Shown: piece by piece, positions 1,887 to 6,326 of the stretch
Numbering within the stretch: the first letter of the stretch is position 1
Layout: the number at the start of each line of letters is the position of its first letter
DNA from: Paraphysomonas bandaiensis
Taxonomy: Eukaryota; Protista; Chrysophyceae
DNA: 64,000 nt
Direction: 5' to 3'
NCBI GenBank assembly: GCA_965644295.1
Contig: CBFFRP010000150.1
Location: 248,001 to 312,000 of the forward strand
The notes under the pieces: generated by a model
What the model was told of the DNA's origin: nothing
Seen by the model: only the letters and a program-made list of their open reading frames with translations
Database searches by the model: none
Translations under genes and position numbers: made by a program

Positions 1887-3236
1887 TTACGGACTAGAAC
1901 TAGCGGCGGCCTTAACGTGTTTAGGTTTCTGTCCCTTCTTCAAGGCCTCCATATCTTCCTTAAACTTCGAAGTGCCCATCAGAGCTTGCTCAATAGATGC
2001 AGAGCACGCCTCCATATTATGCTCGTCGCAATTATTTTGAGTAGGGTCAGTTGGAACTTCCAAAGCATTTCCCTTAGCGAGAAGAGCAAGGGTGCGCAGA
2101 ATAGGGGTATCCAATATAAAGCGCCCAACCGGCTTGTCCTGGTAGAAAGATCTGCTAAAGGTGAAAGGATTTCCAAAGAGGTCAACCAAAAAGTAAGCGA
2201 ATGGGTTGTTCACAATCATGGACTGGGGAAACATGAGACGATTGGCAGCACCAAGACTCCAGCCCTCAAAGTTACGCACTTCGTGCCACATGTACGAGGG
2301 GTTGAACATGACATCACCGGGGCCAAGTACCACTTCTGCCTTTGGAACATAACTAGGTAGGCGACGGGCAAAACCAGCAGGGACGTGCTTAGAGAATACA
2401 CCAAGTACGTAGGGAGACCACTTCGGCTCAACAAACCACCACTGCTTCCGACCACTGTACTGGAAGAATAGGTTTGCTGGCATTGCGCAGTGAAGACTAG
2501 TTCCAGTGGTGTCATCCGAGAGCTGAGGGTTACCCTTCCCAAAACCCATAAACCAATTTACAACTAAAGGATTGAATGGTTTGCCACCTTTCCAGTTTTT
2601 GAAAATTCGAGACACCTCCATGTGCTCCATAATTTCAGGATTGCGGCGAACAAATTCATCAACGTTTTGGAGATACACGTCTTTCCCGGCCAACATATCA
2701 TAGATAGCATCACCAAGCTTTACTTCCTTGGCAGAAAAAGTTCCCGTGTCATCAGTGGCGCCATACTGGCTGGCTCGCTGTGCTGCTTCTCTTTGCTTGC
2801 TCACTAGGGGGTTACGAACGGATAGGAGAGAGGTATTCCCATAACGTTCGGCAAAGTACTCAGGGTGAGACCAGGCTTCCAAACGAGAAATATTCTTTCC
2901 CATTCCACGGAAAATTACAGGATACAAAAAGTTTTTGCTCAGGACCTGCAACTTTTCGTAGCTAAAGTCATCAGGAGTCCAATCCTCTACGATCGTTAAA
3001 TCCCAAGTTAGGGGCTCAGGAATAAGCTGTGTAGCAGCCCAATCCACATAATTCACATAATTTGTAAATAATTCACTTCCTGGTTGTGATTGTGTGATGA
3101 AAACTGCTCCCAGATATAACCAAGCTGGAATAGATATGATACCGTTCCAACCCATCCATGCACACCATGGGATGATCAGTAACGTTGCAATCAGTAAGAA
3201 TTTCTTACACGCTCCCCCACTAGTATTCTTTCCCAT
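1887..3236 (-). CDS. JmjC/cupin-like (Cupin_8) 2-oxoglutarate oxygenase with N-terminal hydrophobic anchor, 449 aa, single exon
   Basis: TGTSLHC, NLFFQYSGRKQWWFV, LGPGDVMFNPSYMWHEVRN match the JmjC pattern. Confidence 0.85.
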   Translation of the reverse strand: MGKNTSGGACKKFLLIATLLIIPWCAWMGWNGIISIPAWLYLGAVFITQSQPGSELFTNYVNYVDWAATQLIPEPLTWDLTIVEDWTPDDFSYEKLQVLSKNFLYPVIFRGMGKNISRLEAWSHPEYFAERYGNTSLLSVRNPLVSKQREAAQRASQYGATDDTGTFSAKEVKLGDAIYDMLAGKDVYLQNVDEFVRRNPEIMEHMEVSRIFKNWKGGKPFNPLVVNWFMGFGKGNPQLSDDTTGTSLHCAMPANLFFQYSGRKQWWFVEPKWSPYVLGVFSKHVPAGFARRLPSYVPKAEVVLGPGDVMFNPSYMWHEVRNFEGWSLGAANRLMFPQSMIVNNPFAYFLVDLFGNPFTFSRSFYQDKPVGRFILDTPILRTLALLAKGNALEVPTDPTQNNCDEHNMEACSASIEQALMGTSKFKEDMEALKKGQKPKHVKAAASSSP

Positions 3237-3945
3237 TCTATGAATTTGTTATAAAACAATTGCTAAGGATATATACACTTATCCTAATAGATATATATGT
3301 CTATATATATGTATATCCATCGCAATGGTGTGTATATCCATATGGTGTATTGCAGTTATCTTCAACTGCCATCTGCGAACCATCCATATCCATATCGCAC
3401 TTTCCGGTACCCATCTATTGTATTCTCCTGTATATATATGTATTCCATGTAATACCCATCTAGATTCCATACTTTAGATATGGGACATATACACGTGTGT
3501 AGATACAAGACCTTCTAGATGTATTGATGTACATGTACGCCAAGCGTACAGCTATACACATACGATCCTATATACCTCATACGCATTCATCATCACATCA
3601 AGCTCTCTCATTGGCTAAAACATCTGGACACTGCCCCATACATACACATACACATACACATACAGCGTGATCTCATGCATAGAGCACACACACACTGACT
3701 CTAGATGTCTATATATATACCCATAACCACAATCTGATTAATATAAACAACTGTCTTATTGTGAAGTTCGACAGGATTACGACTAACTTTTTTATTTGAT
3801 AGTCTGTATAATTAGTTTGCGTTGTTATTATTAATTTACCCAGTTAGAACTCGTTCACTCCATCCTATTCGTGTGATTGGCTGATACATACAACATCGGT
3901 GCTATCGTGTGATAATAACACCTGTGCTGTATATAACAATCGAAT

Positions 3946-4434
3946 ATGACGGATTCAAACGGTACTGTATGTCCGAAATTGGATAATGCAGTCTTTAACT
4001 CGTATTGCCACACCGCTGACCTTTGTATGGGATGATTTTGGGGGCCGGACGCCGAGTTCTCAGCAATGATCGGCGTCATTGACGTGGTAGTGGGGTACAC
4101 AGGTGGTAAAGCTGCAGATCCTGTATATAAATCAATGAAAGACCACTCGGAAGCTGTACGAGTGTCTTTTGATCCTGGAGTTGTCGATTATGAAGAAATT
4201 CTCGAGGCGTACTTTGAGCAGCTTGGCAGCAAAATATATAGACCCTCCGCTCGTAGGCAATATAGAAGTGCTATTATGGTTCACACAATAGATCAGCGCT
4301 ACATGGCTGAAAATTTTTTGAGAGATCTGAAGTTGTTATCCGGTCGTGAAATATATGTGGATATTGAAAACGCCACAGATTTCTATCGCGCAGAGGAGTA
4401 TCATCAGAAATATTTCGCCAAGCAGTCGCGTTAG
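3946..4434 (+). CDS. msrA: Selenocysteine-containing peptide methionine sulfoxide reductase A (Sec at TGA 4033-4035), 162 aa
   Basis: Open frame from ATG 3946: MTDSNGTVCPKLDNAVFNSYCHTADLCMG-U-FWGPDAEF..GYTGG..HSEAV..QYRSAI..FYRAEEYHQKY. TGA falls exactly on the Cys of the MsrA GCFWG motif; SECIS lies ~30 nt after the TAG stop. Confidence 0.92.
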
Positions 4435-4462
4435 TCTACATAAGAATTATTGGCCAGCAGGT

Positions 4463-4520
4463 TTTATACTGAATGACGGTCATGTGCTTCATTCGAAGTG
4501 TATGACCCGAGAAGTATGAA
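4463..4520 (+). promoter_or_regulatory. Eukaryotic SECIS element in the msrA 3' UTR
   Basis: Helix I TTTATACT(4463-70)/AGTATGAA(4513-20); core ATGAC(4473-77)/CGAG(4508-11); 13-bp helix II GGTCATGTGCTTC/GAAGTGTATGACC; loop ATTC. Confidence 0.85.
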
Positions 4521-4847
4521 TCGTGTTGCCGAAATCCTGTGTACCTGGTGTTAACTATTGTATAAACTTACAAGTTTATTAAGTATGTGCGGATTAATAA
4601 ATTATAGAACTTTTTATCTTTTTAAGACTAGAAATAAATTTACGTCAATCGACAATTCGGCCAGGACATAATCACTTGAATGTATCACTAACAGGAAAGC
4701 AACAGGTTCCCTCTTCCGAGTGCATTTTCTATTACGATGTTTGAAAGTATATAGCTTACTATGAATTACAGGTACAGTTACAATATTGAGTCGGAGGTTT
4801 CAAGAAGGCAATCTCTTACCCAACTTAAAATATGTTTAAATATATTA

Positions 4848-6326
4848 TTATAATCTCGTCAATACCATGCACACTGTATAGAAAGTAAAGAAGGCAACCA
4901 TAAGCATAATAGGTTCTGCTATCATTCTGGAGCGTCTAAATTCATAGGATACTCTGATCTCCTTGTTATGTTCCTCGATAATGTTTTTCGCTTTTATAAT
5001 AAGCACTGGACGACCTCCGTTCAATTCTGAATCCAGAAACGTATATCTGGAAGATCGTTAAAAACATGCATCAACTATCTCAATAGTCAGTACCTTATGC
5101 TGGTCGACTGCTCAATGGGGTACGGTGAATCAACTCTAATATCGAAGCTACCCTCCGGCAGAATGATTTTTGTTTCCATATCCTCTGCCCACGCCCCTTC
5201 AAACCCTGCGAAGAAGCTAAAACGTAGGATATACCGACCATTTGCATCAATTGCGAGGATGCTTTCAGTCGGCAAAGAGTATCCGATGTAGAACTCGGTC
5301 TGCCAGCCTCCAAACATTGGGAAGCGCGTCTCGATGTCAAGCGCAATACTTGATTTAAGAGTTTGGATGCTTGAGCTTGAGATGTTACCTATCTGATCCC
5401 TACGCAGTGCTTAAACGAGGGGTTGGCAGCAACTGGTGTTCTCACCTATAGTATATACTGTGCGCCTCGCGCGGAAGCTTCGTACGCAATGACCGGAAGG
5501 ATGGAGAGACAGATGACGCATGTTGATAATCAAACCGAGAGAAGCCTCCACTGAGCTTAGCTCCTGCATGTGTGAGGTCATATGTCTCCTCCACAGCAAC
5601 GTTCCCCCAGTGCGACACTTCGATCTCTCGACCCACTTCTGTTAGCTTCATAAAAGGCTTGTTGTTCATATAGTGAACTGTAAGAGGAAAATTCTACGCA
5701 AATACTATGAATAATAGTATCGTCTGCTTTAGACACAATACCTGTAAGGGTCCAATTTCCTGAAAGGGACCATATACGAGACTTGATCCTCTGTGCGAAT
5801 AGGGTTCAGCTTTGGTAAACGACTCGACCGACGCACTCGCAAGCTTCACGATAGTTTTTTGTTTCTCCGTATGATAAGGAGATGTAAAATAAACATTTTC
5901 CTTGAACAAAACCTTTTGATTATCATTCTGGGAAATTTCTCTGGGGTACTGTTCGAGAATGTCAGTAAATATAGCCACAAATTTAAATATAGCTTCAGTC
6001 TCATTTAGTGTCAGAGTAAAGAACGTGTAGTGCCCATCCCTAACAACTTGTAAGATTAAACATTAATATATTATCAAAGATTACGTTTGTGGTTCAGATA
6101 GAGGAATTTCCTGGCCTTTCATGGACGCTGTCAACATACTTAAGCGGTATGCAAGACGATCAGGAAAACATATCTTATATTCATCTTTAATATTCTTTGC
6201 TTTAATATCTACAGTCATTTTAAGCATTGCATTTGAAACATCTAGATGTCTTTGAACATCACTATTAATAGATGCTCTAGCAGCTACTAATATAATAGAG
6301 ATGTACAACAAATACAAGAATATCAT
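4848..6326 (-). CDS. RPN1: Ribophorin I / oligosaccharyltransferase subunit 1, 5 exons (6326-6085, 6039-5742, 5693-5446, 5399-5094, 5046-4848)
   Basis: REIEVSHWGNVAVEE, GFSRFDYQ, YYRDQIGNISSS, RFPMFGGWQTEF, YTFLD..GRPV, signal peptide and C-terminal TM. GT-AG introns of 45-48 nt join the frames. Confidence 0.93.

Follow-up and report, generated by a model that had tools for sequence, protein, structure and literature searches.

Selenocysteine-containing forms of the peptide methionine-S-sulfoxide reductase MsrA (Sec-MsrA) were first described in Chlamydomonas and subsequently in Ostreococcus and Thalassiosira pseudonana (PMC2375036), and MSRA has been named as one of the algal selenoproteins with the widest distribution (PMC7539508, PMC9404770). 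In the algal genes (Chlamydomonas reinhardtii, Ostreococcus, Thalassiosira pseudonana), which we compare by description, a UGA codon specifies selenocysteine (Sec) at the position of the catalytic cysteine and a SECIS element is located in the 3′ untranslated region (3′UTR). The gene described here shares this organization, and since Sec-MsrA has already been published for algae, it is an added member of a known family. The initial annotation of the locus had likewise stated that Sec-MsrA occurs in some algae and bacteria, in line with PMC2375036 and PMC7539508 and with the MsrA of Clostridium oremlandii. We analyzed a 64-kb stretch of DNA, hereafter the window, that corresponds to C150:248001-312000 in genome G000 (62.6 Mb, 669 contigs). 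Our results, which rest on sequence comparison, indicate that positions 3946-4434 of the window (+ strand) most probably constitute a functional Sec-MsrA gene, a reading to which we assign a probability of about 0.92.

The MsrA reading frame and its UGA codon

The predicted complete coding sequence, 3946..4434 (+), is a single exon without a targeting peptide that encodes 162 residues and ends with the stop codon TAG at 4432-4434. An in-frame stop is found three codons upstream of the ATG at 3946, and the frame that starts there is open except for one TGA at 4033-4035. Everything that the ORF caller lists in the MsrA frame is 4066..4434 (+), 122 aa. The initial annotation had reported that this call starts at 4066 and that the frame extends through the single TGA to the ATG at 3946, and all of its coordinates proved correct. 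The product reads MTDSNGTVCPKLDNAVFNSYCHTADLCMG, then the residue encoded by TGA, then FWGPDAEF...EEYHQKYFAKQSR, so that the TGA lies between ADLCMG and FWGPD. The piece downstream of the TGA matches the Pfam PMSR profile (PF01625) with an E value of 2e-31 and a score of 109.7 bits (cut-off 23.7) over profile positions 9-148 of 153. The first eight positions, absent from this match, are those with G-C-F-W-G; a profile search of the genome that reads through the TGA matched positions 3-149. All invariant MsrA columns are retained in the aligned window protein, and its active-site motif is M-G-U-F-W-G, with the UGA (4033..4035, +), read as Sec at residue 30, on the Cys column. MAFFT alignment thus places the TGA on the catalytic Cys of Cys-type MsrAs, as had been proposed when the codon was first seen to replace the Cys of GCFWG. 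Upstream of it lies an N-terminal extension of 29 residues with Cys9, Cys21 and Cys27. The product is predicted to be a cytosolic peptide methionine-S-sulfoxide reductase.

We compared the window gene, its paralogue on contig C289 and 12 relatives from other assemblies, the DNA of eleven of which was obtained from protein-search matches and that of one distant Sec form (L025) from a metagenome scan. TGA occupies the same codon in all 14 genes, the window gene being 41% to 64% identical to the 12 relatives, and Cys is present at the TGA column in P0040 (AAGCFWG), P0041 (AMGCFWG) and 43 aligned Cys-forms. Within the codons for A-D-L-C-x-G and F-W-G-P-D, third positions vary (GCT/GCA/GCC/GCG, GAC/GAT, TGT/TGC, GGA/GGC/GGG) while the residues remain constant, and the whole peptide upstream of the TGA (CPKL...ADLC-x-G-U) is conserved despite synonymous codon variation. 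This pattern indicates that both sides of the TGA are under protein-level selection and that the upstream part is translated. One relative, P0063, is a named MMETSP transcript whose contig (L019) carries the TGA and the downstream hairpin on one molecule, which argues that the TGA is not spliced out in at least this relative. A sequencing error, an intron or a pseudogene lesion, each of which the initial annotation had named as a way in which its reading could fail, is at odds with the retention of the TGA in the paralogue and 12 relatives and with the protein-level conservation on both of its sides.

These data also bear on the possibility that the locus is a pseudogene or a truncated gene, in which the UGA at 4033 acts as a stop, leaving a 29-residue peptide or a dead 122-residue fragment started at ATG 4066, and in which the downstream hairpin is incidental. 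The ORF call described above is what such a gene would produce. This interpretation is difficult to reconcile with the conservation of the TGA and of both its flanks in 14/14 genes, with the synonymous variation upstream and with the intact state of all invariant MsrA residues. Furthermore, purifying selection clearly acts on the fragment beginning at Met41 together with the upstream part, although such a fragment would be devoid of the catalytic residue.

A word-index protein search with a 132-residue piece returned about 2,000 MsrAs, the closest of which are 55-63% identical; no near-identical protein was found among them. Scanning of metagenome contigs yielded matches that are almost all bacterial-type Cys-MsrAs of 35-44% identity, the sole useful Sec form being the distant L025. 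The latter (metagenome contig Ga0307391_10161331, 39-452) encodes a Sec-MsrA with ..FGMG-U-FWNPE.. that lacks the CPxL extension; behind the gene is a long hairpin whose core reads AUGAAGG. At least one other eukaryotic lineage of that metagenome sample thus has Sec-MsrA.

Rendering of the Sec site in protein databases

The expectation of the initial annotation that automated pipelines would mishandle this gene was borne out by the truncated ORF call in the window and, among database relatives, by three kinds of error. The models of four relatives begin with the Met that directly follows the TGA site (P0002, P0003, P0005, P0008), ten have W at the Sec site (P0004, P0009, P0012, P0014, P0015, P0017, P0019, P0023, P0026, P0042), and two skip the site: P0036, from the chrysophyte Epipyxis, and P0081, from Cyclotella cf. 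meneghiniana. In the site-skipping models, the active site is lost to a spurious intron.

The presence of W at this position in at least nine database relatives could be taken to mean that the UGA is decoded as Trp, or as Cys, owing either to a variant code or to near-cognate read-through. The DNA of every W-bearing relative that we fetched has TGA, and the gene does not translate to the W-bearing protein; the W is thus a code-4 gene call. In addition, of the window's 14 long open frames, 6 end in TGA, hence TGA is a normal stop in this genome, which also possesses tRNA-Sec and SepSecS (see below). Trp, moreover, is no substitute for a catalytic nucleophile. Decoding of the UGA as Trp or Cys is accordingly the most improbable of the readings that we considered, and we retain Sec as the residue at position 30.

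A SECIS hairpin in the 3′UTR

The 3′UTR contains a hairpin at 4463..4520 (+) that is recognized as a SECIS by its folds, by a descriptor scan and by the same architecture in relatives and in Sec-containing glutathione peroxidase (Sec-GPx) genes. On the + strand, the fold comprises a helix I of 7-8 bp (4464-4470 / 4513-4519), a 7-nt 5′ loop GAAUGAC (4471-4477), a helix II of 13 perfect pairs (4478-4490 / 4495-4507), an apical loop AUUC (4491-4494) and a 5-nt 3′ loop CGAGA (4508-4512). AUGA (4473-4476) and GA (4509-4510) are positioned as in a SECIS quartet, flanked by the two helices, with an A before the AUGA. In minimum-free-energy folds, an extended lower stem (4450..4532, +) prolongs helix I. 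The 106-nt hairpin context folds with -34.7 kcal/mol (z = -4.2), and none of 200 shuffles was as good. Both strands of the window (128 kb) were scanned with a descriptor that consists of [AG]UGA-N-helix II (>=10 bp)-N-GA and a flanking helix I (>=6 bp). The hairpin at 4463-4520 is the only match, against an expectation of 0.1 derived from thirty dinucleotide shuffles.

Among the relatives' 3′UTRs, 12 fold to the same plan even though only the core can be aligned. This plan consists of helix I, a 7-nt GAAUGAN loop, a helix II of 5-13 bp, a 5-6-nt NGANN loop and the return strand of helix I. The exact hexamer GAAUGA lies within about 110 nt of the stop codon in 10 of the 14 genes, and variants of the 5′ loop include GGAUGAC in L023 and GAGUGAC in L104. 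Alignment of the hairpins with MAFFT misaligned their 3′ halves because the apical lengths differ, and the descriptor scan with shuffles was for this reason used instead of a covariance model.

In the same genome, four GPx genes carry a TGA for the Sec of the canonical ..AS[LQ]-U-G.. site: C145:93384-93725 (L112), C77:46011-46394 (L114), C352:28083-28208 (L119) and C41:266651-266932 (L115). SECIS candidates with the same core, G(A/G)AUGAC-GG...-UGAU(A/G), are found downstream of three of them, while the fourth, L115, is followed by a very compact candidate (GAAUGAC...UGAAA) with a helix II of about 5 bp. That the relatives and the Sec-GPx genes have this hairpin plan in common indicates that the window element is a SECIS of the type used by this organism.

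An unpaired apical AA(R) is a textbook feature of SECIS elements and is needed by those of animals. The window hairpin has no unpaired AA (or CC) at its apex, where AUUC closes the perfect 13-bp helix II. Of the 'complete SECIS' claimed in the initial annotation, the hairpin, its AUGA/GA core and its coordinates hold, whereas the word 'complete' does not, given the AUUC apex. The Rfam SECIS covariance models gave no match at E <= 10 in the region of the window. None of the 17 comparison loci, Sec-GPx genes with bona fide SECIS-type elements included, is matched by these models either, and the negative outcome is therefore without weight in this lineage. The non-canonical apex and the missing Rfam match are the two features of the hairpin that would suit a truncated gene. 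Against this stand a chance expectation of about 0.1 hairpin per 128 kb and a design that is conserved in relatives. Taken with the selection pattern of the coding sequence, this makes a pseudogene or truncation very unlikely.

A second possibility accepts a genuine Sec-MsrA and supposes that its SECIS is weak or dependent on a lineage-specific SBP2, insertion of Sec being inefficient or regulated, for instance by selenium supply. This scenario finds support in the AUUC apex on a perfect 13-bp helix II without unpaired A on the 5′ side, in the A-rich apical loops of several relatives and of GPx SECIS elements in the same genome, and in the AUGG core of the paralogue (see below). On the other hand, an intact and conserved gene argues that the product is made, a compact element also follows the Sec-GPx gene L115, and the SBP2-binding core of the window hairpin is canonical. 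We regard a weak or conditional element as unlikely, albeit clearly less so than a truncated gene, and favor a functional gene served by the hairpin at 4463-4520. As SECIS features, the apex without AA and the AUGG core of the paralogue are new here to a modest degree.

A second Sec-MsrA gene in the genome

The genome contains four PMSR loci. Two, on C485 and C152, are stop-free, and two, the window gene and a gene on C289, each have exactly one TGA. The C289 gene (L012; 1405-1990) is 53% identical to the window gene (85/161 residues) and reads ..VICPKMD...ETADLCLG, TGA, FWGPDVEFSAM.., the TGA being located at L012:1513-1515. A hairpin at 1945-1990 of L012 has the position and architecture seen in the window gene with the core GAAUGGC, that is, AUGG and not AUGA, and no better SECIS candidate was found in the 1.49 kb downstream of L012. 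Its orthologue L023 has AUGA in the core.

In a maximum-likelihood tree, L104 is the partner of the window gene (94/79) and L023 that of the paralogue L012 (98/87). Both pairs fall inside an 18-row clade, starred in the tree, whose members either retain the TGA or have a gene call that begins with the Met immediately beyond it; the two Cys-type MsrAs of the genome (C485 and C152) lie in the other half. Because the window gene and L012 belong to separate sub-clades, each with an orthologue from outside this genome, they represent an ancient pair of Sec-encoding paralogues, both of which have long been retained.

Selenocysteine machinery of the organism

The initial annotation had supposed that the organism possesses Sec machinery, and the genome search substantiated this with tRNA-Sec, SepSecS, SelD, KTI12/PSTK-family genes and eEFSec; it covered tRNA-Sec, PSTK, SepSecS, SPS and eEFSec. 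The tRNA-Sec gene is located at C339:26360-26445 (69.6 bits, cut-off 47) and is called by ARAGORN as tRNA-SeC(tca), with anticodon TCA. SepSecS was detected with an E value of 1.6e-126, and SelD/SPS through three exon matches at C428:18313-19168. There are two loci of the KTI12/PSTK family, C150:413597-414794 and C141:308085-308645, neither of which is firmly assigned to PSTK; the former is on the window's own contig, about 100 kb past the window end. The selB profile matches many translational GTPases in the genome. For an eEFSec exon of the multi-exon locus on C287 (L127:694-1203, - strand), the PDB matches are confined to human eEFSec (E 3e-23) and archaeal SelB. Three other selB-profile matches were rejected as eEFSec: the first two are BipA and IF-2, and the third is eIF2-gamma.

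Neighboring genes and genome context

Upstream of the MsrA gene and divergent from it is a Cupin_8/JmjC-like gene of 449 aa with an N-terminal hydrophobic segment (1887-3236, - strand). The 709-bp spacer between the two genes is AT- and microsatellite-rich, with (AT)n at 3287-3316 and (ACATAC)4 at 3640-3664. On the other side, a multi-exon ribophorin I gene (OST1; 4848-5669, - strand), which continues upstream, is convergent with the MsrA gene. The end of its last exon is at 4848, and 4435-4847 (about 410 nt) is common to the 3′UTRs of MsrA and ribophorin I. LHC/FCP (PF00504) and PsbO (PF01716) have no match in the 62.6-Mb genome, which contains at least six silicon-transporter loci (PF03842), one of them at C150:402264-403475. 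From these absences and the silicon transporters, the organism appears to be a stramenopile that forms silica and is non-photosynthetic. A colourless chrysophyte would fit these data better than a photosynthetic diatom, and one relative in the gene family, P0036, is from the chrysophyte Epipyxis.

Proposed function and N-terminal cysteines

In the mechanism that we propose, translation would start at ATG 3946 and end at TAG 4432-4434. At the UGA (4033-4035), eEFSec would deliver Sec-tRNA(Sec) for the insertion of Sec, directed by the SECIS at 4463-4520, located 440 nt downstream in the 3′UTR. Sec30 would then act as the nucleophile on Met-S-O sulfoxide and be converted to a selenenic acid, which may be resolved by Cys27 (C-x-G-U) or Cys9 (CPKL), or else by direct reaction with glutaredoxin/glutathione, the route of the Clostridium oremlandii Sec-MsrA. 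We infer Sec insertion itself, how the enzyme is recycled and how well an AA-less apex works.

Both cysteines belong to conserved motifs. From the alignment, the C-P-K-L motif with Cys9 (3970..3981, +) is a candidate for the resolving Cys or for a docking element. Among Sec-form relatives with a sufficiently long N-terminus, only the distant L025 and P0053 lack C-P-x-L, and the 43 Cys-forms of a 72-sequence alignment are all without it. Given that the forms with C-P-x-L make up one clade, this distribution is not independent evidence of coupling between motif and Sec. Cys27 (C-M-G-U; 4024..4026, +), three residues before Sec, is on grounds of conservation a second candidate for the selenenylsulfide partner. 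It is kept in 11 of the 13 genes that cover the position, the window gene included, with L019 and L025 as exceptions. The N-terminus is confidently placed in the AF2 model of a relative (pLDDT 92 for residues 1-10). Mammalian Sec-MsrB1 has an N-terminal recycling Cys (PMC6316033), and by analogy with this enzyme, one of the N-terminal Cys of the window protein may resolve the selenenic acid.

A bolder and rather doubtful proposition is that CPxL...C-x-G-U marks an undescribed ochrophyte subclass of Sec-MsrA in which an N-terminal Cys, and not a C-terminal Cys or external glutaredoxin, would be the resolving residue, like Cys4 of MsrB1, together with SECIS-binding machinery that would accept an apex without AA. 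The CPxL and C-x-G-U motifs go unmentioned in the portions considered of the algal Sec-MsrA papers PMC2375036, PMC7539508 and PMC9404770. The conserved N-terminal Cys motifs, in combination with the absence of a C-terminal helical domain, are a modest novelty of the protein.

What is generally understood about Sec-MsrA in aquatic protists is not altered by this analysis. It adds a predicted selenoprotein gene, verified by comparison, and its paralogue to a genome for which gene callers would give a truncated, catalytically dead MsrA, and it documents three error modes of public Sec-MsrA proteins, namely truncated models, a W in place of Sec and spurious introns. A natural SECIS with a canonical core and without an apical AA could be useful for retraining SECIS predictors on stramenopiles, and the conserved cysteines near the N-terminus point to a recycling route for Sec-MsrA that can be put to the test.

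Comparison with known MsrA systems

Compared with the algal Sec-MsrAs, the window gene differs in its host, which appears non-photosynthetic, and in the absence of AA from its SECIS apex. Classical 2-Cys and 3-Cys MsrAs (E. coli, bovine, poplar) share the fold and the active-site residues (GYxGG, E, QYRS, EEYHQ), but they combine a catalytic Cys with C-terminal resolving cysteines, whereas the window protein has Sec and lacks C-terminal resolving cysteines. Eukaryotic Sec-MsrAs are also found in the fungus Gonapodya prolifera, which we set beside the window gene by description; they are reported to be most similar to the enzymes of A. oremlandii and Chlamydomonas, and each carries an additional Cys at a place other than the canonical resolving position (bioRxiv 10.1101/2021.02.26.433065). 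This fungus represents a different lineage, for which transfer from bacteria has been proposed (bioRxiv 10.1101/2021.02.26.433065).

The best PDB sequence match of the window protein is the selenoprotein MsrA of Clostridium (Alkaliphilus) oremlandii (CoMsrA; PDB 4LWJ-4LWM, 4W8C), with an E value of 3e-25. CoMsrA is also the best fold match (rmsd 1.1-1.2 Å over about 140 columns) of the AF2 model of P0015 (pLDDT 93.7), a relative about 54% identical to the window protein. Foldseek relates this model to MsrA structures with a probability of 1.0 and a TM of 0.8, and the MsrA fold is thus seen in a relative. Like the window protein, CoMsrA has a natural Sec at the catalytic site, and FWGPDA directly follows its Sec16. 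CoMsrA (209 residues) possesses a C-terminal helical domain of about 65 residues (PMC4333827) that the window protein lacks: the match ends at CoMsrA chain residue 142, and the window protein stops 4 residues later. Unlike CoMsrA, the window gene has a eukaryotic SECIS in its 3′UTR, and whereas CoMsrA has no Cys at all (1-Cys type), the window protein has three in its 29-residue N-terminal extension.
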